This document shows, piece after piece, positions 2,501-56,603 of a DNA stretch of 64,000 nucleotides. The stretch is from positions 59,768,001-59,832,000 of the forward strand of contig NC_043010.1 of NCBI RefSeq assembly GCF_006345805.1. The letters run 5' to 3'. Position 1 is the stretch's first letter. Every line of letters begins with the position of its first letter. The position numbers and the translations under genes are program-made. Below the pieces are notes generated by a model. That model saw only the letters and a program-made list of their open reading frames with translations, searched no databases and was not told where the DNA came from. Source of the DNA: Octopus sinensis (taxonomy: Eukaryota).

Positions 2501-2677
2501 ATCCACAAAGGAAGACTGAGAGGGAACTGCTGGTTCCCACTGACTCACCACCAACACTATTCCATCAACATGAAGCCATTGTCACACCATAGCAGCAGTG
2601 ACACAGACAACCATTAACAACAGAACATTGGTACCAAGTCACAGTTTGTACAACAAAGGATTTTACACACAATGAAG
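2501..2677 (+). other. Non-coding leader exon (exon 1) of U1; true 5' end unknown
   Basis: ~177-nt block repeated 7 times, each ending at a GTAAG donor (here 2678); contains uORF 2570-2617. Confidence 0.75.
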
Positions 2678-3140
2678 GTAAGTTTATTGTTCAATATTAT
2701 TTATTCAAATCACGTGAAATAATGATTTCATATGTAGCCTTCCTGTAATATCAAAATGTAATATTCTGATGGTGGCCATATTAGATCTGTGTCAGTTCAT
2801 ATTGAATGTCTTCTTTTCCATAATGGCTATCAAATAATCTACTAACAGGAGAACATTAAAGAAATGGAATATTTATTTTGACTTAACTGTATATTTTAAA
2901 AATTATTTTGAGTACGTAGCAGTTTCCTGCTTCATATTTTACCCTGTCTATTATTATAGACTCAAGCAGTCATTTTCATTATATTCCTAGTAATTATGTT
3001 GTATGTAATCATTGAAGTATATGTGAGGTTTATTCTAATTAGTTTAAAAGTAAAATTTCTCATTGAAAGTATGACCATTGAGGTAGAGGCCAAGGAGTTT
3101 GTATGTATGTGTGTATATATATCTCATATTGTATATGTAA

Positions 3141-3180
<40 letters not shown>

Positions 3181-5226
3181 GAGTTTGTATGATTGTGTAG
3201 AGAGGGATATGTATTATTCCAAGAAATTCCAACTCTGTCTGTTTTTTATGTTTTATTTATATTCTTTATGATATTAATGTAGAATATAGGATATATAGTA
3301 TAAATAATATATATATAGTAAAATGTATATATTGATTGTCTTATTATATTGAAGTATTGATTGTCTTATTATATACATATATATATATATATATCATCAT
3401 CATCATCATTGTTTAATGTCCGTTTTCCGCGCTAGCATGTATAAACTGTTACATTTGCAATATGAGATCTAGAAATTTATGTCCCTGTGTGCATATGGAT
3501 ATTTAACAGCAATGCCTTTGAAATATTTATATTTTATTCCCAAAATCATAGGAGCACTAACCATATGGGTGGGTCACTTATGAAAAATCTAAACCTACAT
3601 TCTTGAACATTTAGGCTTGAACTAGCTTTCAATATTGATTTGTTAATTTTGAATAATTTATATGTATTTTATCATATAAAGCAATTTCAAAAGATATTTA
3701 CTTCATTTCCACTTTTAATTTAGACATTCTTTCCTTTTCTAGATTTTCATATTATTTTAGCCACAGTTCCTTTAATATATTGATTAGTTGTTATTCCTGC
3801 TGTTTCAAAACTAGAAATAAGTAATGTATTTTCTCTCTACTCCCTTCAATAGATTTAACTAAACATTTATTATAGGTTGCTCCTTAATTATTGCATTTTA
3901 TATCTTCCCTACATCATATTGTCAAAGCATTCTATAAATGACTGGAGATACATCTCTTATCAGTATCTTTGTAATTGACTTCTTCCATGAAAACAGTCAA
4001 TCAAAATGTTTGTGAATTCAACTGATATTTGTATTAAATAGGTAAGATGTTTTATCAGCATCAAGAATAATAATTCAAGTACTGAACATGTTAAAATAGG
4101 AGAATTAGATCTAATTTGATCAATCATAATTTACGTGTGTGTTACTATTAATGGGGACTGTATTGGCGCTAATATAACTGAATTTCTCTCATATCTCACA
4201 GCATTATGCTTATTCTTTCTTAATAGTTGGTGGAGACGTTTTTTCCTGAGAATATCTCTACAAAATGGTAACACTATAGATTAGATAAGTCAGCTATTTT
4301 GTAATGTAAGTTGGGATATAAAGCTGAGCCATGTTTCTTTGCATATACTGGCACCAGCGAATTAACTCAAGCTTTACTATGTATGACATGTGTATACATA
4401 ATTGTGATGAAAGAGAAGAAAAGTATTTGATACATCCACTGCTCTCTCTCTTTCTCTGTCTCTGGTACCTTACAGTCATACCAAAATATTAGACATAGAT
4501 TAATATCAGGTTAAGAAAAGCAATGTTTAGACAGTCAGGGATTTTCTGTTAATTGCCAAGAATGTGCACTGAAGCAGTTCCTTGTTATTGTCTGTTATGC
4601 TCTGCCTGAACAAGCATAGTTATGCAATGTCTCCTTATAATTCTGCTTGCATTTAAGCATGGCATGGAGTTGTTGAGAAATTATCTAAGATTAATTCACA
4701 ATTCTTATATGCGTCTTATGATACACTTTGCTTTAATCAGAGTCTATACCATAGATGTATATGCAGAGTGTGTTATTCTAGTTTGTGTATAAAAATCTAT
4801 GTTCCTAGAAGAGGCTGCATTCAAAGACAGTTTGGTTGGTATAAAAAGATCAGTTTGTTGGAATTTTAATATTTAACATTGCTGTAATTGTTGTTTCTTG
4901 TCTGCATCATATACCTTTTAAAAGAAATTCATTTGCATCATTTGAACAATAAAAAACTACATGTAAAGAGGGATGTGTTTCATATTGTAGCTTTTGTAAA
5001 TTTACATTGATTTCTCATTAATATACAAATAGATTAATAAGTATTTTATAATAAACATTTTTCATATGGAAACAACCAAAATAGAAAAGAATTTAGAGTA
5101 GATGAATAAACATTATGACCAGTTATGTTTCTTTTTTTTCTCAATATTGCAATGAATATTTCTATTTCAGACCGAACATTTGAAGCTGTCTTTCCCTTGG
5201 ATACTGTATTAACAACAAAACCAGAG

Positions 5227-7584
5227 ATGTTGCGACTTCTGTGTGTTTTACTGACTTTCTTCCATTGTTCCTTAAGTGAAGATATCACATACCATGTTGA
5301 AGAAGAGAATATTCCTCATACCTATGTAGGGGACATTGCTACTGACTTACAGAAAGCAGACAGCTCCTTCTTAAAGAATAAGGATTTAATTACATTTAGT
5401 CAACTCCAACAAAAGGGAGAACAGTTGTTCAATGTGACGAGAACAGGTAAACTGTACACTGTTGAGACATTGGATGCTGAGTCTGTGTGTAGTTATGAGA
5501 AAGAATGTTTTGAAATCGTTAAAGTTGCTGTTCACAAATCCAAGACATTTATGAAGATCTTAAAGATTAAGGTCATAATAGAAGACATCAATGACCACCA
5601 ACCTGAGTTTCCAACTGAAGAGGTCAGCATTCAGTTTTCTGAAACTGATGGTAAAGGCACGAAAAGATCAATACCCAATGCTGTTGATAATGATATGGGT
5701 CATAAGAACAGCTTGGTAACATATGAATTAAAAAAGGATAATGGACATTTCTCTTTATTAGTTGCCAAACAAGCTGATGGCATATCATCATTAGAAATTA
5801 TTTTAGAAGAGAAATTAGACAGAGAAACAAAAGACAGTTACAATATTGAAGTCATTGCTAAAGATGGGGGAACTCCACCAAAACAATCTATTTTAAAAGT
5901 GAAAATATCTGTAAAAGACGAAAATGATAACAGACCACAGTTTTCTCAAAGTATCTACAATGTTTCTATAGAACATAAACATAAAAAGAACATTCCAGTA
6001 GTCACATTATCTGCCAGTGATTTAGATATTGGCAGGAATGGTAAAATATCTTATTATTTCAGTAGAAAGACTGCAGAAAAAATGAAGAGATACTTTCATT
6101 TAGATAAAAGTACTGGAAAAATTTTCTTAGTACAATCTTTAGAGGTTGACACAAAAAATTCTTTAAAATTATACATTGAAGCCAGAGATGGAGGTATTCC
6201 TCCTCTCAGTACCATAGCAACTGTTAAGGTAAATGTCATCAACCAGCAGAACAATCCTCCAAATATTGATGTGAACTTTATTTCCACACAGAATCACAAC
6301 ACAGCTACCATTCTGGAAGACATCAAAGTTGGTAGTTTCATTGCTTATGTGATGGTCACTGACAATGATGTTGGACACAATGGAGAGGTGAACTGTCATA
6401 TCAAAGACGACACATTCAAACTACAGTCAATGGGATCGAAGGAATATAAAATAGTTCTAAAGAAAGCAGTAGACAGAGAGACACAGGAACATTATCACTT
6501 TACTGTGTCGTGTGAAGATAAAGGATTACCTGCTCTGAAAACTGATAAAGATCTGTCAATCCAAGTGTTGGATGTGAATGATGTAGAACCACACTTTACG
6601 AAAGACACATTCAAGTTCCTTACCTATGAGAATGACAAAGCTAATTTCCCTATTGGCTTTATCAATGCTACAGACCCAGATATTGGTAAGGGAGGTGAAT
6701 TGTCTTATTCTCTGAGAAATAAACAGCAATATCGTCTGCCATTCCAGATTATCAACTCTGGCTTTATTTCAACAAACCAGTCTTTAGACAGAGAACACAG
6801 AGATTTCTATGAGTTTGAGGTTTTTGTGAAAGACAATGGAAGCCCATCTCTGAATAACACAGTGAATGTTGAAGTGGAAGTATTGGATAGAAATGATAAT
6901 GCTCCATATTTTACATTTCCTAGTGTTGACCCTTTCACTCTTAATGTCCACTATCATCCGCAAAGTAAGAACGACATCACAGTTCTGAAAGCATCTGATA
7001 TAGACAGTCACATGAATGCTTTTCTCAGGTATGAAATCGTTTCAGGTAACGAGAGACAGTTATTTAAACTGGACTCTTTCACTGGTGTGTTATCTTACTC
7101 ACGCACAGTTTACCAAAATGATGCCGGATCATATGAGCTTGAGTTTGTTGTGAAAGACAGTGGTACTCCAGTTCTGTCGGCAACAACTAGTGTGTCTTTG
7201 ACACTGACTGTTAGTAACAAGACGTCACCAATGTTCACAGCTGTGCACCTACCAAGTGATAACACAATAGATGCGACATTGTTGATTATCATTGTAGTAG
7301 CAGCTGTGATAGTATCTATAGCTATTGTGGTTTCTATAACCCTGTGTATTGTGAGATGTAACAATGTGAGAAATAGCTCATCCGAAAGAACAGCAGAAGA
7401 GAAACAGGCATACCAATGTCGCAATGAGATGAGACAGTTGATCTATCAAGGTAACAACAGTGTACCTGTGATGTCAGGTAATCGAGGAGAGATGTCAGAG
7501 AGATATGGTCATTCGAGGAGCCATTACTATCCTGAAGACTGGAAGACATCCACAATGAGTCGGACACTTCAGAAGTCTATCAGG
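5227..7584 (+). CDS. PCDH: Protocadherin U1 large exon: signal peptide, EC1-EC6, TM, proximal tail
   Basis: Acceptor tttcag at 5170; ATG 5227 MLRLLCVLLTFFHCSLS; EC1 Cys-X5-Cys (CSYEKEC); DRE, DxD and DxNDN motifs; TM LLIIIVVAAVIVSIAIVVSITLCIV; phase-0 donor AGG/GTAAGC. Joining to 8949-9099 and 9186-9301 gives ~874 aa in frame. Confidence 0.95.
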
Positions 7585-8948: not shown

Positions 8949-9099
8949 AAATATAGCCAACCGATTGAGGTGACATCTTATGGAGACAACAGACCATCCT
9001 CTAACTATCCCACTGACACACTGACCAGTCGTAAGAGCAGTGGACAGTGCTGGAGTGAGCGGTCAAGTAGACAGTATGAAGAAATACCAGCAATGTCAG
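8949..9099 (+). CDS. PCDH: U1 exon 3 (cytoplasmic tail; alternative start 8946)
   Basis: tacagCAG tandem acceptor; KYSQPIEVTSYGDNRPSSNYPTDTLTSRKSSGQCWSERSSRQYEEIPAMS; phase-1 GTAAGG donor. Confidence 0.9.
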
Positions 9100-9185
9100 G
9101 TAAGGGTAGTTTAAACTAAGAGAATAACAAGGATAAATATAATATACAAAACTGACTCTATGTATTACCATTGTATATGTTTCAG

Positions 9186-9301
9186 CTATCTATGGTATGC
9201 AACAGGACCCCACAGCCAACACTGAGAAACTGCCCCAGGACAGATATGTGAAACCTCCAGAAAGACAACTCCCTGCTACACCTGATGTTATAAACAACTG
9301 A
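9186..9301 (+). CDS. PCDH: U1 terminal exon 4
   Basis: tttcag acceptor; (A)IYGMQQDPTANTEKLPQDRYVKPPERQLPATPDVINN*. Confidence 0.85.
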
Positions 9302-10377: not shown

Positions 10378-10553
10378 ATCCACAGAGGAAGACTTGAGAG
10401 GGAACTGCTGGTTCCCACTGACTCACCACCAACACTATTCCATCAACATGAAGCCATTGTCACACCATAGCAGCAGTGACACAGACAACCATTAACAACA
10501 GAACATTGGGACCAAGTCACAGTTTATACAACAAAGGATTTTACACAATAAAT
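10378..10553 (+). other. Leader exon 1 of U2
   Basis: Conserved leader block; uORF 10448-10495; donor GTAAGT at 10554. Confidence 0.75.
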
Positions 10554-12860: not shown

Positions 12861-13315
12861 TGATAGACATAGCATTTAATTCTTCCTCAAATCACATCGT
12901 TCATTGCCAGGTGCCTCTGCAGGTAGAATAATAGAATAAGTAATTATGAACAGTTTATATCACATACTTTGCTTTTGTCATGTACATGAACAATGTTGTG
13001 TAAGGAAATCTTATTTTATTTCACTTTTTATGAATGGAACTGTGACTTGTAGAGTGAACTGAACACTCTGTTTATTAATGATTACTGTTGGTTGTAGGTG
13101 TTTCTTTAGTGAACAACATATGATTTTTATTGAATATTTTTTGAAATTCTATTGTTTTGTGTGGTTAATCTTATGATGTGGGTGTTTAATGTTTCTTAAC
13201 TTTTTCATGAGGATTTGTAATAAAATTGTGAATATATATTCCTAATTAGATTTTATATTTTCATTTCAGGTGTGGTTTACATTTTTGTTTTCTATAGAAG
13301 TCCTTCTTCATCCAA

Positions 13316-15685
13316 ATGGCAGATATGTTTGTAGCAATTTGCATACTTCTCTCTTGTATGCATTGTAGTCTGTGTAAAGACATTACCTTTCATGTAAAGG
13401 AGGAGAATGTTCCTTACTATTTCATAGGTGACATTGCTACTGAAACTCTTGTCACCAAAACTCTTTTAACTGACGATGCCAGTCTCTTCACATTTAATCA
13501 ACTTAAACAGAAAGGAACTCAACTGTTTAATGTAACAAAAGAAGGAAAATTGTACACAGCTCAAACTTTGGATGCCGAAGTTTTGTGTCGATATAACACT
13601 GAATGTTACAGAACTGTGAAAGTTGCTATCCATAAACATAAAACATTTATGAAGATCTTAAAGATTAAAGTCATAATAGAAGACACCAATGACCACCAAC
13701 CTGAGTTTCCTCAGAAAGAAATCACTCTACATTTTAGGGAAGCAGATGGTAAAGGTATGAAGAAGGCTATACCTAATGCTGTTGATAAAGATGTTGGATA
13801 TCAGAACAGGCTGATTAATTATAAATTGAGAAATAATTCTGTGAAATTTGTGCTGTCTGTTTCTAAAAGAGTGGATGGAATATCCAGATTGGAAATTGTT
13901 TTGAATGAAAAATTAGACAGAGAGCAAAAAGATATCTATCATGTTCAGGTATCAGCTACAGATGGGGGATCCCCACCTAAAGAATGTGTCTTAAAGATAA
14001 CAATAATAGTAGAAGATGAGAATGATAATTTACCTCTTTTCTCAAATGACCTCTACAATATTTCTATTCAGAATACTTATCAAATATACAAACCGATATT
14101 AACTCCTTCTGCAAATGATAAGGATAGTGGTAAAAATGGGATGATTTCTTATTATTTTAGTCCAATGACTTCTGATATTGACAAAACATACTTTGGCCTG
14201 AATAAAACAACTGGAGATATATTTCTAATTGATGAAATTGATATTGATGAAGAGAGGATTATGTATACACTTTATATAGAAGCCAGGGATGGAGGTAATC
14301 CACCCCTGAGTTCCATAGCAGCTGTCCATGTAAATGTTATCAACGAACACAACAAACCCCCAAATATTGATGTGAACTTTATTTCTACACAGAATCACAA
14401 CACAGCTACCATTCTGGAAGACATCAAAGTTGGTAGTTTCATTGCTTATGTGATGGTCACGGACAATGATGTTGGACACAATGGAGAGGTGAACTGTCAT
14501 ATCAAAGACGACACATTCAAACTACAGTCAATGGGATCGAAGGAATATAAAATAGTTCTAAAGAAAGCAGTAGACAGAGAGACACAGGAACATTATCACT
14601 TTACTGTGTCGTGTGAAGATAAAGGATTACCTGCTCTGAAAACTGATAAAGATCTGTCAATCCAAGTGTTGGATGTGAATGATGTAGAACCACACTTTAC
14701 GAAAGACACATTCAAGTTCCTTACCTATGAGAATGACAAAGCTAATTTCCCTATTGGCTTTATCAATGCTACAGACCCAGATATTGGTAAGGGAGGTGAA
14801 TTGTCTTATTCTCTGAGAAATAAACAGCAATATCGTCTGCCATTCCAGATTATCAACTCTGGCTTTATTTCAACAAACCAGTCTTTAGACAGAGAACACA
14901 GAGATTTCTATGAGTTTGAGGTTTTTGTGAAAGACAATGGAAGCCCATCTCTGAATAACACAGTGAATGTTGAAGTGGAAGTATTGGATAGAAATGATAA
15001 TGCTCCATATTTTACATTTCCTAGTGTTGACCATTTCACTCTTAATGTCCACTATCATCCGCAAAGTAAGAACGACATCACAGTTCTGAAAGCATCTGAT
15101 ATAGACAGTCACATGAATGCTTTTCTCAGGTATGAAATCGTTTCAGGTAACGAGAGACAGTTATTTAAACTGGATTCGTTCACTGGTGTGTTATCTTACT
15201 CTCGCACAGTTTACCAAAATGATGCCGGATCATATGAGCTTGAGTTTGTTGTGAAAGACAGTGGTACTCCAGTTCTGTCAGCAACAACTAGTGTGTCTTT
15301 GGCACTGACTGTTAGTAACAAGACGTCACCAATGTTCACAGCTGTGCACCTACCAAGTGATAACACCATAGATGCGACATTGTTGATTATCATTGTAGTA
15401 GCAGCTGTGATAGTATCTATAGCTATTGTGGTTTCTATAACCCTGTGTATTGTGAGATGTAACAATGTGAGAAATAGCTCATCTGAAAGAACAGCAGAAG
15501 AGAAACAGGCATACCAATGTCGCAATGAGATGAGACAGTTGATCTATCAAGGTAACAACAGTGTACCTGTGATGTCAGGCAATCGAGGAGAGATGTCAGA
15601 CAGATACGGTCATTCGAGGAGCCATTATTATCCTGAAGACTGGAAGACATCAACAATGAGTCGGACACTTCAGAAGTCTACAAAG
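13316..15685 (+). CDS. PCDH: Protocadherin U2 large exon
   Basis: ORF MADMFVAICILLSCMHCSLC..., six EC repeats plus TM; phase-0 donor AAG/GTAAAT. Joining to 18864-19014 and 19386-19504 gives ~879 aa in frame. Confidence 0.95.
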
Positions 15686-20204: not shown

Positions 20205-20380
20205 TTCCACAGAGGAAGACTGAGAGGGAACTGCTGGTTCCCACTGACTCACCACCAACACTATTCCATCAACATGAAGCCATTGTCACACCATAGCCGC
20301 AGTGACACAGACAACCATTAACAACAGAACATTGGGACCAAGTCACAATTTATAACAACAAAGGATTTTACACAATCAAT
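20205..20380 (+). other. Leader exon 1 of U3
   Basis: Conserved block; uORF 20274-20321; donor GTAAGT at 20381. Confidence 0.75.
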
Positions 20381-21700: not shown

Positions 21701-23317
21701 GTGGCAACATTCCTGTTCCTAGGTGGCAGACTTAATCATCCATTGTCTGCTTTAATACCACCTTCCATCTCTTGGGTTCCTCGATCAGAGTCCACTCTGC
21801 TGCAAGCTCTTAAGCCAGGCTCTCCCATCCAGCTGTTGAGCAGTCATGGGCACTGCCCTTCTTCCTCTCACAAATCTCTCTCCCAAGCTAAAGAGGTGAT
21901 TCCACCTCTTAGAGATACCATTAGTTGATCTCTGTGGTATAAACTATGAGTGAAACCAGAGATTGGGACAATTTAGCCAGTCCACGTTGCTCATTCTCAT
22001 TTGCCTACAATAAAATATTACTGAGGCACGGACCGTTCCCTTCCCGAAGCAATAAGAAACATGTCAGAATACAATCTAAGGGAGGTAACTCCAATACTTG
22101 ACTTTTTCCTCTTTAAATAATTTTTGTCGTGGTATCTTTATTTTGGTTTAAAACTTGACAAAAGAAACCTGTCTTTGTTTTATTGCTTATTCCTTATAGA
22201 AGATCAGCTCAACTGCTAAAAGAAAGAGAAGGGGTTAATCTTAGAGCAGAGCCTTGACCTATTAAAGATAAGTAAGGGCCATATGGCGGTATTAAATTGG
22301 GAGACACATTAAGTCCCCCACCACAAAAAAAAAAGAAGAAAAAATAGAAACTGCCCCACCGACGAGTTTCCATAGAGTTCCTGTCCACTAAATTCCACTG
22401 ACATGGCTTTGGTCGACCTGAGAACAGAGGAGGCCCAAGGTGTTGTGCTTGCGGGGCTAAATCCTAAACAAAATAGCTGTCAAGCAAACTGAACAAAATA
22501 GCCATGCTTACCTGCCATTGTATAAACCTCAGTTATTTCAGCTTTGAAGGTGACACTTTGTTGTTTTTCTTGTTATAGAGAGTGGTATTGGGAAATGGCT
22601 GAAGATGCAATGGTTTGGGGTAAGGTGGTGGTGGTGGGAGTAGTGATGACAGTCGAAGTTACGCTCAACTTGTTAACAAATTCTCATCCATATTTCATTA
22701 ACTTATAAATTAACCATTCTACCCCTAATAGTCCATATTAGATAATAAATTACAGCTGTGTAAATTAACAAAACTATCATTTTAACATGAAGGTGGTTCT
22801 CTTCCTTACCAATTGTTAAGATGTTGTCAGAGACAAACTATATTTTTGAGAAACACTGGAAACAGTTTTATTATATGGAAGAAAAGAAAAATGAGTTGAG
22901 TTTGATTTGATGGAAATGTAAAATAGGCAGAGAGCAAAATCAAGTTTCAGGATTTGGGACTTCACAGATGAGACGGCAGTGAGAAACCCCTGGTATAGAA
23001 ATGATAATAAAATACCTGTGTATGTAATCTTTTACAACTTCAGTTAAATTGTTGACTTGTGAATTAATGCATTGTGGCTGGATATTTTGCTTTCAATATT
23101 GAATCTAATTCTTAGTTTAGTAATACATGAACAAATATAGAACTCACATTCTACTCTATAAGTCTAATACTGTTATTTTGGAGCTATAAAATGTTATTCT
23201 TCAACTAATTTAAAAACATGGTCTCTTAATTTTCTTCTTACTATCTCATTTATCTTTTTCAGATGAAGACATTGTCTGCTGTAAAGTGCTGCCCTTTACA
23301 CTAACTTGAGACTAAAA

Positions 23318-25675
23318 ATGCTAACTTATTTATCTATCATCTTGGCTTTCTTCCACTGTTGCTACAATGAACTTATCTATGTAGTGGAGGAAGAAAATAC
23401 TGCTAACTCTTATATTGGAGATATTGCTGAAGATTCTGGTCTCTGGGACAGTTTAAAACACCATGAAAGACACTTACTCACATTCATCCAGCTACAGCAG
23501 AATGGAAGACATCTATTTAATATCACTAAACCAGGGAAAATGTTCACTGTTCATCCATTGGATGCTGAGACTCTCTGTATTCTTGAAAAACAGTGCATTC
23601 ATACAATCAACGTTGCAGCTCACAAAGGAAAAGAGTTTATAAAAATTCTAAAGATCAAAATCATTATTGAAGACATCAATGACCACTGGCCTACATTCCC
23701 TGTCGATCATATCATCTTACAGTTTTCTGAAATGGATGGCCAAGGCAGGAGAAGATCAATCCCAGACGCCACAGACAAGGATGTTGGCAGTCAAAATCGA
23801 TTAATTATGTACAAATTAAAGAAAAAACGAAATTATCCTTTTACTCTACAAGATTTTAAAAGAGCAGATGGAACTTCTCACCTAGATATCGTCTTGGAAG
23901 GTAAACTGGACAGAGAAATTAAAGCTGTTTACAATTTTGAAGTTATTGCTGAAGATGGTGGGAATCCTCCAAAACAAACAATTCTAAATGTTGAAATAAA
24001 TATCTCAGATGTTAATGATAATTCACCAGTTTTTTCTCAGAGAATTTACAGAATTAATATCAATGACACACATCCAAAACATAAGGCAATTGTTACATTA
24101 TCTGCTTACGACTTTGATATTGGTAACAATGGTGAAATATCTTACTATTTTAGTCCTATAACATCTGAAACATTGACTAAATATTTTACATTAAATAGAA
24201 AAAATGGAGAAATTTTATTGTCTACAAATTTAAATTTAGGTAAATTGGATACATCGAAAATATTCATAGAAGCCAGAGATAGGGGCAACCCTCCTCTCAG
24301 TTCCATAGCAACTGTTATGGTAAGTGTCATCAACCAACACAACAATCCTCCAAATATTGATGTGAACTTTATTTTTACACGGAATCACAACACAGCTACC
24401 ATTCTGGAAGACTTCAAAGTTGGTAGTTTCATTGCTTATGTGATGGTCACTGACAACGATGTTGGACACAATGGACAGGTGAACTGTCATATCAAAGACG
24501 ACACATTCAAACTACAGTCAATGGGATCGAAGGAATATAAAATAGTTCTAAAGAAAGCAGTAGACAGAGAGACACAGGAACATTATCACTTCACTGTGTC
24601 GTGTGAAGATAAAGGATTACCTGCTCTGAAAACTGATAAAGATCTGTCAATCCAAGTGTTGGATGTGAATGATGTAGAGCCACACTTTACGAAAGACACA
24701 TTCAAGTTCCTTACCTATGAGAATGACAAAGCTAATTTCTCTATTGGCTTTATCAATGCTACAGACCCAGATATTGGTAAGGGAGGTGAATTGTCTTATT
24801 CTCTGAGAAATAAACAGCAATATCGTCTGCCATTCCAGATTATCAACTCTGGCTTTATTTCAACAAACCAGTCTTTAGACAGAGAACACAGAGATTTCTA
24901 TGAGTTTGAGGTTTTTGTGAAAGACAATGGAAGCCCATCTCTGAATAACACAGTGAATGTTGAAGTGGAAGTATTGGATAGAAATGATAATGCTCCATAT
25001 TTTACATTTCCTAGTGTTGACCCTTTCACTCTTAATGTCCACTATCATCCGCAAAGTAAGAACGACATCACAGTTCTGAAAGCATCTGATATAGACAGTC
25101 ACATGAATGCTTTTCTCAGGTATGAAATCGTTTCAGGTAACGAGAGACAGTTATTTAAACTGGACTCGTTCATTGGTGTGTTATCTTACTCTCGCACAGT
25201 TTACCAAAATGATGCCGGATCATATGAGCTTGAGTTTGTTGTGAAAGACAGTGGTACTCCAGTTCTGTCAGCAACAACTAGTGTGTCTTTGACACTGACT
25301 GTTAGTAACAAGACGTCACCAATGTTCACAGCTGTGCACCTACCAAGCGATAACACAATAGATGCGACATTGTTGATTATCATTGTAGTAGCAGCTGTGA
25401 TAGTATCTATAGCTATTGTGGTTTCTATAACCCTGTGTATTGTGAGATGTAACAATGTGAGAAATAGCTCATCTGAAAGAACAGCAGAAGAGAAACAGGC
25501 ATACCAATGTCGCAATGAGATGAGACAGTTGATCTATCAAGGTAACAACAGTGTACCTGTGATGTCAGGTAATCGAGGAGAGATGTCAGACAGATTTGGT
25601 CATTCGAGGAGCCATTACTATCCCGAAGACTGGAAGACATCGACAATGAACAGAAGCTTACCAATAAACTTTAAG
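23318..25675 (+). CDS. PCDH: Protocadherin U3 large exon
   Basis: Acceptor ttttcag at 23262; ATG 23318 MLTYLSIILAFFHCCYN; six EC plus TM; phase-0 donor AAG/GTAAGT. Joining to 29488-29623 and 29716-29840 gives ~872 aa in frame. Confidence 0.95.
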
Positions 25676-30513: not shown

Positions 30514-30689
30514 ATCCACAGAGAAGAGTGAGAGGGAACTGCTGGTTCCCACTGACTCACCACCAACACTATTCCATCAACATGAAGCCATTGTCACACC
30601 ATAGCAGCAGTGACACAGACAACCATTAACAACAGAACATTGGGACCAAGTCACAGTTTATACAACAAAGGATTTTATGCACACTCAGT
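30514..30689 (+). other. Leader exon 1 of U4
   Basis: Conserved block; uORF 30582-30629; donor GTAAGT at 30690. Confidence 0.75.
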
Positions 30690-38746: not shown

Positions 38747-38923
38747 ATCCACAAAGGAAGACTGAGAGGGAACTGCTGGTTCCCACTGACTCACCACCAA
38801 TACTATTCCATCAACATGAAGCCATTGTCACACCATAGCAGCAGTGACACAGACAACCATTAACAACAGAACATTGGGACCAAGTCACAGTTTATACAAC
38901 AAAGGATTTTACACACAATGAAG
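38747..38923 (+). other. Leader exon 1 of U5
   Basis: Conserved block; uORF 38816-38863; donor GTAAGT at 38924. Confidence 0.75.
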
Positions 38924-43595: not shown

Positions 43596-44328
43596 GAGTT
43601 TTCCAACAGTGAATCATTTTAGTCTTGTATGTCGGAGTTCGATTTTTGCTTCCATAATCTCTCCATTGTCGGAAAGGGAGGATACAAGGGATGTTTTTAT
43701 AAATAAGATAGAATATATTGTAAATGGTCAAATATAAACAAAAAGCAAAATAAAGGAGGCCATTACAAAAATCTAATTACTGATTCTTGGTGTAACGAAG
43801 TTATGTAGAAATGAACAGTATAGAAGGGAAGTAACTCTGCTTAGGCACCATCGCCTCGGGTTCGTTTATTTGGTACCTCGTGGTATTTTAATCCTTTGGT
43901 CTCTATCGTCCCTACTGGCCAATGATGATGACAACTGTTTCGTAGTGCTCCCTTCCTTTAAATTGTAAAGCTCTTTCATGTTTATTGTTATTTCAATATC
44001 TATTAGGTCTGATTTTGCTTTGGTTTCTTATCTTTGACTTTGCCTCGCTTGGTTATTGATTCAAGTTTGTAGGGATCAACATCACCATCATCATTATCAT
44101 CATCATCATCATCATCATTTAACGCCCCTTTGCTAGCATGGGTTGGACGGTTTGACAGGAGCTGGCAATCCTATTTCGTAAGATTTTCTGTCTCGTTAGC
44201 TCCTTGCATCACTTGTTTGAATTATAGAACTGTCTTCTCGTTAACTTATGAATCCAAAACGTGATTACTTGAAACAGTTAATTGATGAGTTGCTTTTTCG
44301 CATTTTATTTTCTTATTTTTACAGTGAT

Positions 44329-46999
44329 ATGTTAAAGATGTGGAGAATTCTGTGTCTGATGTCTTTACTAATCCAGTGCTATCACTGTCTGAACCTCACT
44401 TACCGGGTGAAAGAAGAAAACAGTCCCATTACATATATAGGTTCTATTGCATCCAGTAAACAATTTTTGAAGACCTTTTCATCAGAAGAACTGAAAGTAA
44501 TTACATTTAATCAACTCCAACAAAAGGAGGCAGAATTATTTAATGTCACAACAACAGGGAAACTCTACACTCTTCAAACAATAGATGCTGAATCACTGTG
44601 TAGATATAATAAGGAGTGTTCGAGAATTATTAAAGTAGCTGTTCACAAACAGAAAACTTTTGTAAGAATTTTAAAAGTCAAAATAATCATAGAAGACATC
44701 AATGACCACCAACCTGAGTTTCCAGACAAGGAAATAACTTTACATTTTGAAGAAGGAGATGGCAAAGGAATGAAAAAGTCCATTGCAAATGCCATTGACA
44801 AAGATGTTGGTTTTAAAAACAGATTAATTCATTACAAATTATCGCAATCTAATCACTCGTTTTCTCTGGAAGTATTCGAACATGCTGATGGTGTATCATA
44901 CCTTCAGATTGTTCTAGAAGAAAAGTTAGACAGAGAGGTAAAAGAATTATACAATGTAGAAGTTATTGCAGAAGATGGAGGAACTCCAGCCAAGCAGAGT
45001 GTGTTAAATGTTAAGATTGTAGTTGACGATGAAAATGATAATCGACCTGTTTTTTCAAAGAGAATATATAATGTGTCAGTAGCAAAAACACATAAAACCA
45101 ACATACCGGTCGTCATAGTGTCAGCACAGGATTCTGACAGTGGGGACAATAGGAAAATATCGTATCATTTTAGTCCAATGGAGTTGAACCGCGTAGACGC
45201 AGGGCCAGGGGGTAAGATGAAGACGAGTTTAGAAGTACAGTGTTGAAGAAGAGAAGAAGAGCAGAGATGGAGGAACTCAGCAAGCAGAGTGTGTTAAATG
45301 TTAAGATTGTAGTTGACGATGAAAATGATAATCGACCTGTTTTTTCAAAGAGAATATATAATGTGTCAGTAGCAAAAACACATAAAACCAACATACCGGT
45401 CGTCATAGTGTCAGCACAGGATTCTGACAGTGGGGACAATAGGAAAATATCGTATCATTTTAGTCCAATGACATCAGAAATGGATAGTAGACATTTCCAG
45501 TTGAAACCAGACACTGGGGAGATATTTCTAACAGAAACCTCAAGTCTACAAGAAAAAGTTATTTATGAGTTATTTATAGAGGCTAGAGATGGAGGGAAAC
45601 CTCCTCTCAGCTCCATAGCAACTGTTATGGTAAATGTCATCAACCAACACAACAATCCTCCAAATATTGATGTGAATTTTATTTCTGCACAGAATCACAA
45701 CACAGCTACCATTCTGGAAGACATCAAAGTTGGTAGTTTCATTGCTTATGTGATGGTCACTGACAATGATGTTGGACACAATGGCCAGGTGAACTGTCAT
45801 ATCAAAGACGACACATTCAAACTACAGTCAATGGGATCGAAGGAATATAAAAATAGTTCTAAAGAAAGCAGTAGTAGACAGAGAGACACAGGAACATATC
45901 ACTTTACTGTGTCGTGTGAAGATAAAGGTTACCTGCTCTGAAAACTGATAAAGATCTGTCAATCCAAGTGTTGGATGTGATGATGTAGAACCACACTTTA
46001 CGAAAGACACATTCAAGTTCCTTACCTATGAGAATGACAAAGCTAATTTCCCTATTGGCTTTATCAATGCCCACAGACCCAGATATTGGTAAGGGAGGTG
46101 AATTGTCTTATCTCTCTGAGAAATAAACAGCAATATCGTCTGCCATTCCAGATTATCAACTCTGGCTTTATTTCAACGAACGAACCAGTCTTTAGACAGA
46201 GAACACACAGAGATTTCTATGAGTTTGAGGTTTTGTGAAAGACAATGGAAGCCCATCTCTGAATAACACAGTGAATGTTGAAGTGGAAGTATTGGATAGA
46301 AATGATAATGCTCCATATTTTACATTTCCTAGTGTTGACCCTTTCACTCTATATGTCCACTATCATCCGCAAAGTAAGAACGACATCACAGTTCTGAAAG
46401 CATCTGATATAGACAGTCACATGAATGCTTTTCTCAGGTATGATGAATCGTTCAGGTAACGAGAGACAGTTATTCAAACTGGACTCGTTCAACTGTGTGT
46501 TATCTTACTCTCGTACAGTTACCAAAATGATGCTGGATCATATGAGCTTGAGTTTGTTGTGAAAGACAGTGGTACTCCAGTTCTGTCAGCAAAACAACTA
46601 GTGTGTCTTTGACACTGACTGTTAGTAACAAGACGTCACCAATGTTCACAGCTGTGCACCTACCAAGTGATAACACAATAGATGCGACATTGTTGATTAT
46701 CATTGTAGTAGCAGCTGTGATAGTATCTATAGCTATTGTGGTTTCTATAACCCGTGTGTATTGTGAGATGTAAAAATGAGTAGAAATAGCTCATCTGAAA
46801 GAACAGCAGAAGAGAAACAGGCATACCAATGTCGCAAGTGAGATGAGACAGTTGATCTATCAAGGTAACAACAGTGGTACTGTGATGTCAGGTTAATCGA
46901 GGAGAGATGTCAGACAGATATGGTCATTCAAGGAGCCATTACTATCCTGAAGACTGGAAGACGTCGACAATGAACAGAACACTCCAGAAGTCAACAAGG
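44329..46999 (+). pseudogene. PCDH: Protocadherin U5 large exon, apparently disrupted; pseudogene or (more likely) uncorrected assembly errors
   Basis: Intact signal peptide and EC1-EC2 from ATG 44329; ~210-bp duplication (44968-45180 and 45261-45470) with an 80-nt spacer; many 1-4 nt indels from ~45850 to ~46995; donor GTAAGT at 47000. Confidence 0.6.
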
Positions 47000-49035: not shown

Positions 49036-49093
49036 CCTCCTCTCTCTCTCTCTCTTACACGCATATGCACACACACACACACTAAACATCACA

Positions 49094-49272
49094 ATCCACA
49101 AAGGAAGACTGAGAGGGACTGCTGGTTCCCACTGACTCACCACACAACACTATTCCATCAACATGAAGCCATTGTCACACCATAGCAGCAGTGACACACA
49201 GACAACCATTAACAACAGAACATTGGGACCAAGTCACAGTTTATACAACAAAGGATTTTACATACAATGAAG
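49094..49272 (+). other. Leader exon 1 of U6 (with a few small indels)
   Basis: Conserved block; donor GTAAGT at 49273. Confidence 0.7.
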
Positions 49273-50723
49273 GTAAGTCTATGAATGTTATTTGGTATTA
49301 TTAAGATATTTGACTGATGATTGTTAGAGAAACTTTCTTCAGCCATCTTTTACTATAGAATATAATAAATAGAAATTATGTCAGTAGACATTTAAATATG
49401 GTCTTTGCCAGTTACACGGTTTCTGTTGAGATTTATATGTTCATGATTCATATTTTGCTGTTAGGAAGTGTGAAATAATATTTAATTATGGTTATTTTCC
49501 AAGTGAAAATATTTAAATCCAGTCAGTGTTGTGTCTTATTTGCAGACATCTTCCTATTATTATCAGTATTGATAATGTATAATATATAACCAGAAGATGT
49601 TCTTTATTGTGTGTATTAAAAAAAAGAATCTGAGTGTTTCTTGTGAAGGATGTTTTGAGAGAGTCAAGTATCATTATTGTGTTTATATGTAAGAATGGGT
49701 TATATTAATATAAAATATTAAAGTGAAACTGGGAGAAGAGTTGACAAGATGGTGGTTTAGTGTCAACATAAATAATCAATATTGTGTTGTGGTATTATTT
49801 AAGTCTTTCTAAATTTAATATTGTATCAGATTTTATTGGTTTTCATGTATTTGCTGCCTTTAAGGTGAACTAGTATCATATTGGTTGTTTATAAATAATA
49901 TCTTATTTTTTTTAATATTTATTCATAGTACTATACTTCTGCTGAAATATCAATTCGTGTTTCTGCAGTAAATTAACTTATTTCAATGTACAGAAATTTC
50001 CTAGAATAATTTAACAGTCAACATTATCAAGAGAAGATAATGTTATTTAATTTTGGTGTAAGAAATTATCTTTAAAGTATTTTATATAAGTATACTATTG
50101 GAACAGTACTAAGTGACGTTAGAGGTAAGTGTGGTATGGCTGAATTCAGTCATTTTAAAGCATTTGATGTGAAACTACATCGAAAAGACATGGCATATCT
50201 GGACCATCACACCACCCCATCATCACTTAATGTCTCTCTTCAATAGTTAAATTTTGACAATTGCCAAGGCAACATCTATAGTTGTTACTTATTGTGCTCC
50301 AGCATGGACACAACCATTAACACAATGAAACTGTTGCAGTAATGACAGTGTAATGAAATCATATCAGTGATATGAATCCAGATGTGATTCTGCTTCATAG
50401 ATTCAGCCAGCTGTGCACCTCCTCCTCCCAAATCAAGCCATAATATTAACTAATATTCTTATTTGTTTCTCTACTAAACTCTGACTCATCCTGCCGTTCT
50501 CCTGCATCAGGCCAACTCATCTTGATGCTCTGCTAAGTTATGGGTGCAACCATTTCCCCTCCACCGATATACTATTCCACACTACAGAACATTCTAAGTT
50601 TCTTTTAATGTTTTACATATTATATTTCTATGTTTTACCAACGATAATTTATTGTTTCTTCACATATGAAAGACACTTTTCTCTCATAATTTCAGGTTAA
50701 TTGACTGGTATTTAACTCAACAA

Positions 50724-53073
50724 ATGAAGATGGTCTTAATAGCGATATGGATATTACAGTCTCTGCTCCACTGTTCTGTTTCTAAAGACATTGTTTACCA
50801 TGTGAAAGAAGAGAACAGTCCTGTTATCAACATAGGAGACATTACTGCTGATTCCCAGTTAAAGGACACTGCATTATTATCGTTCAGTCAGTTGCAACAG
50901 AAGGGAACACAGCTGTTTAATGTGACCACCACTGGGAAGATATACACCACACAAACACTGGATGCTGAGTCTCTGTGTACTTTTGAGAAAGAATGCTTTC
51001 ACACAATTAAGGTAGCCGTTCATAAAGCAGGTAAATTTATAAAGATATTGAAAATTAAGGTGATTATAGAAGACATCAATGACCATCAACCAGAGTTTCC
51101 TGTGGAAGATATAATTCTGCAATATTCTGAAACTGAAAGTAAAGGCACAAAACGGTCAATTCCCAATGCCATTGACAAAGATGTTGGATTGACAGAACAG
51201 ATTAGTGAATTATGAATTGAAGGGAAGTAACCAACAGTTTTCTTTGTCCACATTCAAAAGAGCAGACGGAGTATCTTTTCTTGAAATTATATTACAAGGA
51301 AAGTTGGATAGGGAGACGAAAGACAGCTATAATATAGAAGTGATTGCTAAGGATGGAGGAACTCCACCCAAACAGGGTGTCTTAAATGTGCACATAACTG
51401 TGAAAGATGAAAATGATAACAGACCAATTTTCTCTGAGAAAACATACAATGTCTCTATACAAAATAACCATGAAAAGAATAGACCAGTTGTTGTAATGAT
51501 GGCAGAAGACTCTGATATTGGAGAAAATGGTAAAGTTTCATATTATATCAGCCCAACAACGTCAACAGATTCAAAAGATAATTTTATTATAAATGAGAAA
51601 ACTGGAGAAATATTCTTAGCCAAAGAATCACAATTTGACAAAATGAAATCATTTAAATTATACATTGAAGCCAGAGATGGGGGCAACCCTCCTCTCAGTT
51701 CCATAGCCACGGTTATGGTAAATGTTATCAACCAGCAGAACAATCACCCAAATATTGATGTGAACTTTATTTCTACACAGAATCACAACACAGCCACCAT
51801 TCTGGAAGACATCAAAGTTGGTAGTTTCATTGCTTATGTGATGGTCACTGACAATGATGTTGGACACAATGGACAGGTGAACTGTCATATCAAAGACAAC
51901 ACATTCAAACTACAGTCAATGGGATCGAAGGAATATAAAATAGTTCTAAAGAAAGCAGTAGACAGAGAGACACAGGAACATTATCACTTTACTGTGTCGT
52001 GTGAAGATAAAGGATTACCTGCTCTGAAAACTGATAAAGATCTGTCAATTCAAGTGTTAGATGTGAATGATGTAGAACCACACTTTACGAAAGACACATT
52101 CAAGTTCCTTACCTATGAGAATGACAAAGCTAATTTCCCTATTGGCTTTATCAATGCTACAGACCCAGATATTGGTAAGGGAGGTGAATTGTCTTATTCT
52201 CTGAGAAATAAACAGCAATATCGTCTGCCATTCCAGATTATCAACTCTGGCTTTATTTCAACAAACCAGTCTTTAGACAGAGAACACAGAGATTTCTATG
52301 AGTTTGAGGTTTTTGTGAAAGACAATGGAAGCCCATCTCTGAATAACACAGTGAATGTTGAAGTGGAAGTATTGGATAGAAATGATAATGCTCCATATTT
52401 TACATTTCCTAGTGTTGACCATTTCACTCTTAATGTCCACTATCATCCGCAAAGTAAGAACGACATCACAGTTCTGAAAGCATCTGATATAGACAGTCAC
52501 ATGAATGCTTTTCTCAGGTACGAAATCGTTTCAGGTAACGAGAGACAGTTATTTAAACTGGACTCTTTCACTGGTGTGTTATCTTACTCTCGCACAGTTT
52601 ACCAAAATGATGCCGGATCATATGAGCTTGAGTTTGTTGTGAAAGACAGTGGTACTCCAGTTCTGTCAGCAACAACTAGTGTGTCTTTGACACTGACTGT
52701 TAGTAACAAGACGTCACCAATGTTCACAGCTGTGCACCTACCAAGTGATAACACAATAGATGCGACATTGTTGATTATCATTGTAGTAGCAGCTGTGATA
52801 GTATCTATAGCTATTGTGGTTTCTATAACCCTGTGTATTGTGAGATGTAACAATGTGAGAAATAGCTCATCTGAAAGAACAGCAGAAGAGAAACAGGCAT
52901 ACCAATGTCGCAATGAGATGAGACAGTTGATCTATCAAGGTAACAACAGTGTACCTGTGATGTCAGGTAATCGAGGAGAGATGACAGACAGATATGGTCA
53001 TTCGAGGAGCCATTACTATCCAGATGACTGGAAGATGTCTACAATGAACAGAACACTTCAGAAATCTACACGG
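50724..53073 (+). CDS. PCDH: Protocadherin U6 large exon with one apparent +1 frameshift at ~51191
   Basis: Acceptor tttcag at 50695; MKMVLIAIWILQSLLHCSVS; ORFs 50724-51215 and 51205-53154 join if the extra G in ggattGacagaac (U7: ggattacagaac) is removed; phase-0 donor CGG/GTAAGT. Confidence 0.85.
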
Positions 53074-53469
53074 GTAAGTATTATTTTCAGTATATTTGTT
53101 TTAATATTTTCTTCATGTTGTAATAATTTGACTGCTATAAATATTACTTGGTGACATATATCTGATAAATTTTCCTCTCAGAATTGTGTATCGTGTGTTT
53201 CGTATGTGATTTACTTGAAGACACTTTGTATAACCCAACACCATAGGCAGTAAATTGGTCAGAATGTGGCCATAGATATATAGCTTGGCAGTAGATTGTT
53301 GCAGTGGGGAATATGTATCTCTTAAATGACTTGTGTCAATTACTTTCACCTGTTTACATTAAAGCATGACTTTCTTTATCCGTTAGTGGATGACATAAGC
53401 ATCCTAGTATTGCCAGAATCAGTAGACGAAATACCTTGTTGTATTTATTCTGACTTCTTACCTTTTTAT

Positions 53470-53853: not shown

Positions 53854-53859
53854 ATCCTT

Positions 53860-55018: not shown

Positions 55019-55155
55019 AGTGTATCTGAAAAAATATACATCTTTTAATTGCTTCAAGTAATATACGGATAATTCAATATACTCAAAATACTTAATTACT
55101 CAAATTTATTCTATAACATTACAGTATAACTGGTTGCTGTTTTATTTTACAGCAG

Positions 55156-55306
55156 AAATACAGTCAACCGATTGAGGTGACATCTTATGGAGACAACAGA
55201 CCATCTTCTAACTATCCCACTGACACATTGACCAGTCGTAAGAGCAGTGGACAGTGCTGGAGTGAGCGGTCAAGCAGACAGTATGAAGAAATACCAGCAA
55301 TGTCAG
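55156..55306 (+). CDS. PCDH: U6 exon 3 (alternative start 55153)
   Basis: Identical peptide to U5 exon 3; GTAGGA donor. Confidence 0.9.
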
Positions 55307-55476
55307 GTAGGATAACAATCCATTCTCATTTAATATTACAGTAATTCATTACTAATTATTGTACTAATTATTGTTGTATACTCTGAGATGTAATTACTTC
55401 TGTCTGTGTGTCCCTAGAGTATATCTGATGATGGTGATTGTTTCAGACATTGCTACATTAAAACAATGTTTTGCAG

Positions 55477-55595
55477 GGATCTATGGTAGCCAACAGGATA
55501 CACCAGTGAACCCCGAAAGGCAACAGTATCAAGACAGATATGTGAAACCTCCAGAGAGACAGTTACCTTCAACACCAGATGTCATTACTAACTGA
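55477..55595 (+). CDS. PCDH: U6 terminal exon 4
   Basis: Same peptide as U5 exon 4. Confidence 0.85.
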
Positions 55596-56184
55596 CCACT
55601 GGTCATTTAACTAAATATTGACCCTTTACAATAATATTTCAAATAACCACCAACTCCCTTCACTCACACAAACTAATATAAATATAATAACTTCTCTCAT
55701 TACCTCACAATTACAATATTATATTCCAACCTATGATAGAATATATGGACACTAACAGTGAAGTCAGCAACATTTCAAACCACACACACACACACACACA
55801 CTTAATGTTTTATATACGCTCCTCTTTTCTCTAATATTCTCAGTTAGGTGATTTTTATATTTCCCAAATATCTCTGGAATTAAATTAGAATACGTTTAAA
55901 ATATATTTCTTTATTTTTTACAACAGTGTTATTAAAATCTAACACTTAGGAAATTATATTTAAAAATGGTACCAAAATAAACCTGCCTGAAAATTAGAAT
56001 ATCCCTTCTCTATTTGTTCCTGCATCCTCCATTATAGGTTGGGTGTATATTTAGGTCAGACACATCTTAACCAGAACTGTTCTATATTAACATCATTTGT
56101 TAGTAATATATTTACCAATATCAGTGATGTTTTGTTAATATGAGATCCGTATGAAACACTGAATATATATATATATATCTATGC

Positions 56185-56216
<32 letters not shown>

Positions 56217-56218
<2 letters not shown>

Positions 56219-56363
56219 ATCAGACATGTTGGTGTTATATGGACTTCTTATGGCTGACTGTTAGTGGAGCTGATATTGTTTGTTCTCTTTCTTTCTTTCC
56301 CTCTTCTCTTTGAGGGAAACACAGCATCTTGTGTGTGTGAGTCTGGAGCAAGCATCACCCATC
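56217..56363 (+). promoter_or_regulatory. Conserved upstream blocks A+B of U7
   Basis: Near-identical to U6 and U8. Confidence 0.65.
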
Positions 56364-56426
56364 CCTCCTCTCTCTCTCTCTCTCTTACACGCATATGCAC
56401 ACACACACACTCACTAAACATCACAC

Positions 56427-56603
56427 ATCCACAAAGGAAGACTGAGAGGGAACTGCTGGTTCCCACTGACTCACCACCAACACTATTCCATCAACATGAA
56501 GCCATTGTCACACCATAGCAGCAGTGACACAGACAACCATTAACAACAGAACATTGGGACCAAGTCACACTTTATACAACAAAGGATTTTACACACAATG
56601 AAG
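56427..56603 (+). other. Leader exon 1 of U7
   Basis: Conserved block; uORF 56496-56543; donor GTAAGT at 56604. Confidence 0.75.

Follow-up and report, generated by a model that had tools for sequence, protein, structure and literature searches.

A 64,000-nucleotide (nt) stretch of the Octopus sinensis genome (NCBI RefSeq assembly GCF_006345805.1, contig NC_043010.1, positions 59,768,001 to 59,832,000 of the forward strand; here, the window) contains a head-to-tail array of octopus clustered protocadherin (PCDH) genes, each built of four exons, namely a leader, one large exon with the cadherin domains, and a pair of small 3′ exons. Every complete unit carries a nearly invariant block of about 177 nt at the leader position. 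The block is probably the 3′ homogenised part of a non-coding first exon, kept uniform by gene conversion and, in an 81-nt core, preserved by selection, and it would place the members of the subfamily under shared control. An earlier note on this DNA had taken the window for a PCDH array, and the protein evidence confirms it: Pfam detects Cadherin_2 and five cadherin domains in each of seven long + strand open reading frames (ORFs), two of which are split, and the closest proteins are protocadherins of O. sinensis (90 to 92%), Argonauta hians (about 87%), Octopus vulgaris (85%), and Octopus bimaculoides. The four-part gene model of each unit was derived by tblastn with related octopus and Argonauta protocadherins. 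At neutral sites, the window is about 1 to 2% diverged from the O. vulgaris and O. sinensis loci compared, and the protein collection searched has no entry for the spliced proteins of units 1 and 4.

The window contains exactly seven leader copies, all on the + strand and 176 to 179 nt long, with a mean pairwise identity of 96.6% and identities to copy 1 of 95.5 to 98.3%, in agreement with the seven blocks and few differences listed by the earlier note. No further full or partial leader was found on either strand of the 64 kb by a fuzzy core search and word-7 BLAST. The copies are located at 2501..2677 (unit 1, with the donor GT at 2678), 10378..10553 (unit 2), 20205..20380 (unit 3, with four private changes), 30514..30689 (unit 4), 38747..38923 (unit 5, with one private change only, although its coding exon is pseudogenic), 49094..49272 (unit 6, with three private indels), and 56427..56603 (unit 7). 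When the seven sites are aligned with 100-nt flanks, approximately 175 consecutive columns, starting near ATCCACAAAGG, are nearly all invariant. An invariant GTAAGT donor lies directly 3′ of each of the seven leaders, and the alignment similarity ends a few bases before it, as the note had also observed; the last 9 or so nt before the donor are variable (ACAATGAAG, ACAATAAAT, ACAATCAAT, ACACTCAGT). Four copies end in ACAATGAAG, and the remaining three, those of units 2, 3, and 4, end in ATAAAT, ATCAAT, and CTCAGT, respectively, and have lost the terminal ATG. The two inverted repeats and the TGACTCA site described previously are present in copy 1, with GGGAAC-TGCTG-GTTCCC at 2522-2538, TGACTCA at 2541-2547, and TGTCAC-12 nt-GTGACA at 2580-2603.

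Comparison of these copies with related loci strongly indicates, without proving, that the leader is a non-coding first exon. The search of other cephalopods recommended in the earlier note yielded leader copies at O. vulgaris, O. bimaculoides, and Argonauta loci, and 24 copies were compared, comprising those of the window, O. vulgaris (5), O. sinensis (3), O. bimaculoides (5, one of them on an inverted unit), and Argonauta (4). The GTAAGT donor is kept in 24/24. Downstream of each window leader, intron 1 spans 1.4 to 5.4 kb and ends at the unit's own acceptor, a pyrimidine tract and AG positioned 4 to 56 nt 5′ of the main ATG of the approximately 2.4-kb exon 2 in seven of seven units. The same junction is used at the annotation level: the RefSeq coding sequences P0017 (O. 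vulgaris) and P0006 (O. sinensis) start at the terminal ATG of a leader (10001, L001/L002) and are GT-AG spliced. In the P0017 model, the last six bases of the leader (ATGAAG/gtaagt, with the slash marking the splice junction) are joined to ttttacag/ATTAAT of the coding exon, and in the P0006 model, ATGAAG/gtaagt is connected to ctgttccag/TGT via an extra small exon. A protein search with the first three extracellular cadherin domains (EC1-3) returned no Logan contig more than 60% identical, so only contigs of sister subfamilies were used. Two of these, L012 and L013, belong to a sister protocadherin subfamily (54% identical in EC1-3), are intron-less and transcript-like, and carry a homologous leader at their 5′ end, which reads TTGTCACAC.ATAGCAGCAGT.ACA followed by GGAATTTAACAATGCAG, the latter corresponding to GGATTTTACACACAATGAAG of the window. 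Their leader abuts the homolog of the exon 2 5′ end with no intervening intron; in L005, a related genomic contig, an intron separates the two. Contigs L005 to L009 were rejected as transcript evidence because they are genomic and without the leader. A more diverged homolog, again with a GTAAGT donor, is found in an O. vulgaris sister subfamily about 400 kb from L001 (L010:13960-14137). It keeps CCATTGTCACACCAT, has TGACGTG in place of TGACTCA, and is missing the ATG of the upstream ORF described below. As this diverged homolog retains the donor and CCATTGTCACACCAT, the leaders appear to be subfamily-specific versions of one ancestral exon.

The uniformity of the leader is part of a wider pattern. 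In an identity profile computed as the mean column identity of a MAFFT alignment of the seven units, the leader reaches about 0.95, the approximately 270 nt upstream of it 0.45 to 0.62, and the introns 0.0 to 0.3, which makes them essentially unalignable. The 5′ third of exon 2 shows 0.5 to 0.74 (EC1-3, 50 to 74%), and its 3′ 1.4 kb shows 0.91 to 0.99, including a 213-nt stretch that is identical in five copies and 99% identical in the other two. Among the five intact units, identity at four-fold sites is 0.38 to 0.45 over codons 0 to 300, which is saturated, versus 0.90 to 1.00 over codons 350 to 750, and the switch from diverse to homogenised sequence occurs at about codon 340 of the coding exon. 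Exon 3 is about 97% identical among units, and the edges of similarity coincide with the splice sites. The earlier statement that EC1-3 and the introns are highly diverged holds for the array as a whole but not for units 6 and 7 (48394-55726 and 55727-63400), which are recent whole-unit tandem duplicates with 95 to 99.5% identity including introns and intergenic DNA. Because of this recent duplication, the array represents six old lineages, not seven. The leader is as uniform as the note had found it, but it is not the only such tract: exon 3, the coding exon in its 3′ half, and an upstream block (block A, described below) are equally uniform. The four-fold sites of EC1-3 are saturated while the other tracts are nearly identical, which implies that the duplicates are old and that certain tracts have been homogenised.

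Homogenisation continued after speciation, as two observations show. Four-fold divergence in the homogenised half of exon 2 is 2 to 5% within species versus 14% between the Octopus and Argonauta consensus sequences, and two 1-nt leader indels are present in all five O. bimaculoides copies (GGAAC..GTTCCCC) and in none of the 15 copies of the window, O. vulgaris, and O. sinensis (GGGAAC..GTTCCC). In the homogenised tracts, paralogs within a species are therefore closer to each other than to their counterparts in other species. Unit 5 of the window and the inverted O. bimaculoides unit can nevertheless be recognised as orthologs, with 93.7% identity in EC1-3 and 92.5% in intron 1, compared with at most 72% to any other unit. 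The sequence comparisons indicate that the uniformity of the leader, the promoter-like module upstream of it, the 3′ coding half, and exon 3 is the result of concerted evolution by gene conversion. Near-invariance persists on two probable pseudogenes (units 5 and 6), and the leader of unit 5, a multiply broken pseudogene, is still about 99% consensus-like. The earlier argument that near-invariance points to shared control is not sustained, because the leader is one of several tracts homogenised by conversion and near-invariance alone is no proof of such control.

On the evidence of protein trees, gene conversion has already been proposed for the PCDH arrays of cephalopods (PMC9068888; PMC6339937), and region-restricted gene conversion is known from vertebrate Pcdh clusters (Noonan et al. 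2004, as cited in PMC6339937). The octopus array resembles the vertebrate clusters and the proposal in PMC9068888 in that the membrane-proximal ectodomain, transmembrane, and cytoplasmic parts are homogenised while the specificity-determining N-terminal extracellular domains remain diverse. It differs from those cases in that homogenisation also extends to a non-coding first exon and a promoter block, with tract edges at the exon edges. In the papers found by a literature search on cephalopod PCDH genes, homogenisation of a leader or promoter block is not mentioned.

Selection can be separated from conversion by comparing species. Neutral concerted evolution would predict that the leader consensus diverges at the neutral rate. 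Between the window and O. bimaculoides, the consensus shows no fixed substitutions and two 1-nt indels in approximately 165 nt, against a neutral baseline of about 7% measured at intron and EC1-3 sites of orthologs. Between Octopus and Argonauta, for which two good Argonauta copies were used, a core, GGAACTGCTGGTTCCCACTGACTCAC...ATCAACATGAAGCCATTGTCAC..CACCATAGCAGCAGTGACA, shows mismatches at 4/80 positions (5%), and its flanks show 19/90. The core diverges more slowly than four-fold sites (14.2%; binomial P = 0.008) and than its flanks (Fisher P = 0.003). In unit 1, this 81-nt core occupies 2523-2603 on the + strand. It includes the GGAAC-N5-GTTCC palindrome and TGACTCA(C), along with a 15- to 16-codon upstream ORF (uORF1) from its start codon to about codon 11. 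A 25-nt motif within the leader, TTGTCACAC.ATAGCAGCAGT, survives in subfamilies that are just 54 to 60% identical in protein. From these comparisons, only the 81-nt core looks selected, and the rest of the leader would be uniform within species mainly through conversion.

Several observations weigh against this account. Over its whole length, the leader differs between Octopus and Argonauta by 13% substitutions and about 4 indels, which is similar to the rate at four-fold sites, so most of its length may be unconstrained. The baseline of about 7% rests on one ortholog pair. As the L010 leader shows, the uORF is not universal, and nor is the AP-1 site. The RefSeq models were predicted automatically, the library behind L012 and L013 could be RNA or DNA, and the ORF of L012 is truncated, so this contig could be a retrocopy. 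Finally, the 5′ part of the block, with the palindrome and TGACTCA, could be promoter DNA and not RNA.

The first of these points also speaks for an alternative that we consider unlikely, in which the uniformity is a passive by-product: a first exon that needs only a transcription start site (TSS) and a donor would hitch-hike on gene conversion and carry no designed regulatory information. The equal uniformity of other tracts, including their synonymous sites, the uniform leaders on pseudogenes, the near-synonymous rate of the whole leader, the absence of an RNA-structure signal in both single-sequence and alignment folding, and the lack of both the uORF and TGACTCA in the L010 subfamily are all as this explanation would have them. 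It accounts poorly for a core whose divergence is about one third of that at four-fold sites and about a quarter of that in the flanks, for zero fixed substitutions against a neutral expectation of about 7%, and for the survival of the 25-nt motif between distant subfamilies. In addition, the adjoining introns are not homogenised, which implies that something keeps the leader tract alignable. Conversion combined with selection on the core remains the preferred explanation.

The promoter-DNA point bears on the extent of the exon and on the sequence upstream of it. The leader is the 3′ portion of a module of approximately 420 nt that consists of block A, block B, and the leader and is repeated at each unit. 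In unit 1, the promoter-like part spans 2261..2391 on the + strand, with block A at 2261-2318 (ACATCAGACATGTTGGTGTTATATAGAC...GCTGAT, including the TATA-like motif TTATATAG) and block B at 2343-2391 (ending in ...GGCTGAAGTAAGCATCACCCAT). Block A is about 60 nt long, lies about 240 nt 5′ of the leader, and shows 93 to 100% identity in six of the eight located units; the other copies of block A lie at 10192-10252, 30371-30398, 38512-38570, 48889-48951, 56217-56279, and 63875-63937, the last belonging to unit 8. Block B sits between block A and the leader, and variable (CT)n and (CA)n tracts separate the blocks and the leader. Contigs L012 and L013 continue upstream through a homolog of block B; for this reason, the first exon probably extends 5′ of 2501 and is longer than 177 nt, and the position of the TATA-like block A, together with the upstream reach of these contigs, suggests an exon start before 2501. 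The earlier note had treated the block as the full exon; its 3′ end at the donor was correct, and its 5′ end was probably placed too far downstream.

The same data speak to a second alternative, that in its 5′ half the block consists of promoter or enhancer DNA, with transcription starting inside the block, for example after TGACTCA, and only the 3′ half forming the 5′ untranslated region (UTR). In its favour, TGACTCA(C) is unchanged in 24/24 copies, even in a degenerate Argonauta copy from which the palindrome has been lost; the corresponding position of the L010 leader is taken by TGACGTG, which is bZIP-like; GGAAC-N5-GTTCC, a perfect palindrome as DNA, shows no covariation as RNA; and the annotated models bear on the final bases of the exon only. 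Against these stand L012 and L013, which reach well upstream of the leader core, and block A, which is TATA-like, highly conserved among the units, and a better promoter candidate. We give this alternative a small chance, and a first exon that includes the whole block is favoured over it.

Two side observations concern the region between block B and the leader. Block B (2343-2391; for example, 56321-56362 elsewhere) ends in a donor-like GA/GTAAGC, and the 5′ edge of the leader (2392-2500 region) is acceptor-like, with a CT and CA tract, CACTAAAC, and then AAAG/G. An extra mini-intron of approximately 100 nt composed of microsatellite sequence may therefore lie between them, as judged from the motifs; however, units 6 and 7 have a C for the T of the donor-like GT, and L012 and L013 retain their homologous region unspliced.

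The core contains most of a short upstream ORF. uORF1 of unit 1 lies at 2570-2617 on the + strand, encodes MKPLSHHSSSDTDNH followed by a stop codon, and has an A at -3. Its start, frame, and stop are retained, at a length of 15 to 16 codons, in 22/24 leader copies. In Argonauta, an in-frame insertion of 3 nt adds a His codon, and one strongly diverged Argonauta copy has 16 codons with a different peptide. One of the private indels of the unit 6 leader lengthens uORF1 to 35 codons; L012 and L013 carry a 25-codon uORF in the same frame over the LSH.SSS codons; and the start is missing in the L010 subfamily. Synonymous positions are conserved as well, so what is constrained may be the nucleotide sequence. 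Dampening of main-ORF translation by uORF-bearing 5′ leaders is a mechanism general to eukaryotes. uORF1 resembles such regulatory uORFs in its length, in the A at -3, and in that it is present in the same frame and at a maintained length among copies and species and in a sister subfamily. It differs from general uORF leaders in that one related subfamily lacks the start and in that synonymous positions are conserved too. A second upstream ATG stands at the end of the leader (2672-2674, + strand, in unit 1). It opens a mini-uORF of 2 to 15 codons in units 1, 5, 6, and 7 and is missing in units 2 to 4. Some genes of O. vulgaris and O. sinensis have this ATG in the reading frame of the main ORF, and it is not a conserved N-terminal extension. 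Separately, exon 2 of unit 3 (23263-23304) starts with ATGAAGACATTGTC..., similar to the start of uORF1, ATGAAGCCATTGTC, and opens a 13-codon uORF (MKTLSAVKCCPLH and stop) 5′ of the main ATG.

The other elements of the core were examined as candidate DNA sites and as RNA structures. Seven of the nine TGACTCA sites on the + strand of the window lie within leaders, and the invariance of TGACTCA(C) described above fits a candidate bZIP-type DNA site. The stretch from the palindrome to TGACTCAC may likewise be a candidate site for a bZIP or palindrome-binding factor at the DNA level. As RNA, GGAAC-N5-GTTCC would form a hairpin of 6 to 7 bp, and it may equally be a palindromic protein-binding site. 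The folding energy of the leader shows no excess stability over shuffled sequences (minimum free energy, -28.2 versus -29.5 kcal/mol; z = +0.36), the alignment fold (Alifold) is weak (-5.3 kcal/mol), and 0/17 pairs show compensatory double changes. The TGTCAC/GTGACA stem is broken in L012 and L013 while the primary sequence is kept, which argues against a structural role for it. An Rfam search of the whole window at gathering thresholds and of the leader region at E ≤ 1 yielded nothing meaningful. A structured cis-regulatory RNA was rejected on the grounds of the z score, the lack of double changes, and the broken second stem; the two small stems seen in the earlier note did not stand up as RNA structures, for the same reasons.

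If the leader is a first exon, the question is which coding exon receives it. The earlier suggestion that leaders are interchangeable and could be spliced to the coding exons of downstream units, which would amount to a vertebrate Pcdh-like or spliced-leader-like arrangement, is very unlikely. The donor is the same in every copy, and the stop codon of one unit and block A of the next are separated by only 370 to 890 nt wherever block A was located, which speaks in its favour. Moreover, the P0017 model takes exon 3 (24996-25154) and exon 4 (34039-34164; L001 10001-34167) from downstream units, and two O. bimaculoides PCDH gene ranges span 82 and 135 kb. These unit-crossing RefSeq models could represent real read-through splicing or mis-assignment among near-identical exons, but their junctions cross units only at near-identical 3′ exons, where short reads do not tell the units apart and mis-assignment is easy. 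Exons 3 and 4, with a stop codon, are present separately in every unit, unlike the shared constant 3′ exons of a vertebrate-type cluster. This agrees with PMC9068888, which states that splicing of multiple first exons to common exons does not occur in cephalopods. Each leader lies 1.4 to 5.4 kb upstream of its own acceptor, and ordinary cis-splicing therefore explains it.

Spliced-leader (SL) exons are short (tens of nt), derive from dedicated small-RNA genes, and are donated in trans. The octopus leader is similar to SL trans-splicing in that a large number of distinct mRNAs would share one 5′ sequence, which has a consensus donor. It differs in being at least 177 nt long, in occurring once per gene, in having a cis acceptor downstream, and in lacking an Rfam match, and an SL RNA gene was rejected on these grounds.

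That the block is a dispersed repeat (a short interspersed element or other transposable-element fragment) exonised upstream of PCDH genes is highly improbable: it is short, CA-rich, and microsatellite-flanked, but the seven leaders match the seven complete units in position and orientation, as they do in four other genomes and on the inverted O. bimaculoides unit. A different PCDH region of O. bimaculoides, 102 kb long, is free of copies, the only counterpart in the O. vulgaris sister subfamily is the diverged homolog with the GTAAGT donor, and neither Rfam nor the approximately 290 kb of sequence examined gives any such sign. The linkage to PCDH genes proposed in the earlier note is upheld at every locus examined. 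In L011, leader-like sequence is absent within 10 kb of the coding exon.

The preferred explanation, conversion acting on a first exon with a selected core, suggests the following mechanism. Each unit would be a gene in its own right, equipped with a promoter module (blocks A and B) and a spliced non-coding leader of its own. Ongoing gene conversion would spread and maintain one version of the module across the subfamily, and purifying selection would maintain the 81-nt core on top of conversion. The leader would thus give all members of the subfamily the same promoter-proximal and 5′ UTR control from a TSS predicted to lie upstream of 2501. The most likely mechanism is that uORF1, if translated, dampens translation of the main ORF, with a second mini-uORF from the terminal ATG in many copies, and the bZIP (AP-1-like) site or the palindrome may bind a factor at the DNA level and so contribute to promoter choice. 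The leader is a real and fairly ordinary part of the build of this PCDH family, and probably a regulatory part as well. It is not a new class of element, but it is a clear case of exon-bounded concerted evolution.

The promoters of the variable exons of vertebrate clustered Pcdh genes carry a conserved sequence element (CSE) of about 22 bp that is bound by CTCF (PMC3333863). The octopus array is similar in that tandem PCDH units each have their own promoter bearing a sequence common to all units, and sequence-sharing promoters at every unit are a plausible basis for equivalent, individually selectable promoters. The two systems differ in several respects. Vertebrate variable exons carry their own 5′ UTR, with no separate spliced non-coding leader; the shared element is about 22 bp of promoter DNA in vertebrates versus approximately 420 nt (blocks A and B and the leader) in octopus; and octopus units have their own 3′ exons whereas vertebrate Pcdh genes use shared constant exons (PMC9068888). 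A scan of the window for a CTCF core, CCASYAGRKGGCR with at most 2 mismatches, gave 11 hits versus 6.8 expected, none of them in the leader, block A, or block B, although a divergent site is possible. By analogy, the approximately 420-nt module might be an independently arisen octopus counterpart of the CSE, making the units equivalent for stochastic or activity-dependent (bZIP/AP-1) choice and equipping them with a shared uORF, which we regard as doubtful. If it were so, conversion and selection would keep the module identical at every unit, the shared uORF would set a common translational ceiling, and cephalopods and vertebrates would have arrived convergently at a regulatory logic for neuronal barcoding.

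A 2023 review described the large cephalopod protocadherin clusters as "still-enigmatic" and noted that there are no functional cohesin data for spiralians (PMC10658181). The present analysis gives octopus PCDH regulation a concrete handle in the form of an approximately 420-nt module, an 81-nt selected core, a conserved uORF, and an invariant bZIP-type site. The array is also a clean case of mosaic concerted evolution: the conversion tracts are bounded by exon edges, and a non-coding exon is among them. For annotation and expression studies, a warning follows: reads that fall in the leader, in exon 3, or in exon 2 over its 3′ half are not assignable to a unit. Since reads from homogenised exons fit several units, cross-unit models and per-gene counts need long reads.

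The remaining features of the array follow the unit plan. In unit 1, exon 2 occupies 5171..7584 on the + strand, with the acceptor tttcag/ACC and the main ATG at 5227, and codes for a signal peptide, Cadherin_2, five cadherin domains, a transmembrane segment, and part of the cytoplasmic tail; it is homogenised with the other units from about 6160 on. The corresponding + strand exons are at 13270..15685 (unit 2), 23263..25675 (unit 3), 33365..35766 (unit 4), 44325..46999 (unit 5, pseudogene), 50696..53073 (unit 6), and 58438..60814 (unit 7). The pseudogenic coding exon of unit 5 has a tandem internal duplication of approximately 290 nt and several frame breaks and stops, and its O. bimaculoides ortholog is annotated as a 391-aa product. 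Relative to unit 7, the coding exon of unit 6 has a 1-nt insertion (frameshift) near 51190. An eighth unit begins at the end of the window, as the last copy of block A is found there (63875-63937).

Exon 3 of unit 1 lies at 8949..9099 on the + strand (151 nt, about 50 codons), and its counterparts, given as approximate tblastn ranges, are at 18861-19016, 29482-29619 (diverged), 36548-36698, 47828-47983, 55153-55308, and 62827-62982. Exon 4 of unit 1, including the stop codon, is at 9185..9301 on the + strand; the other exon 4 stop codons are at 1722-1724 (unit 0), 19502-19504, 29838-29840, 38140-38142, 48268-48270, 55593-55595, and 63267-63269. Intron 2 of unit 2 contains a (TA)n and (TG)n microsatellite of approximately 1.3 kb (about 16800-18100) with a GC content of 0.24, which yields spurious long ORFs. 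None of the intronic ORFs of at least 100 aa in the window has a Pfam domain, and accordingly no transposable-element coding sequence was recognised among them. Exons 3 and 4 of unit 3 are divergent outliers despite the homogenised leader of that unit. Exon 4 occurs in at least three sequence types (1593-1724 and 38021-38142 versus 48142-48270, 55467-55595, and 63141-63269); the type with ...GGAPPDVSSTSERDHYQ...VVVS and stop is common to unit 4 and the unit upstream of the window start, and units 5 to 7 have another type. The exon 3 acceptor (8943-8951 and equivalents) is a tandem CAGCAG (NAGNAG), which allows isoforms differing by one glutamine.

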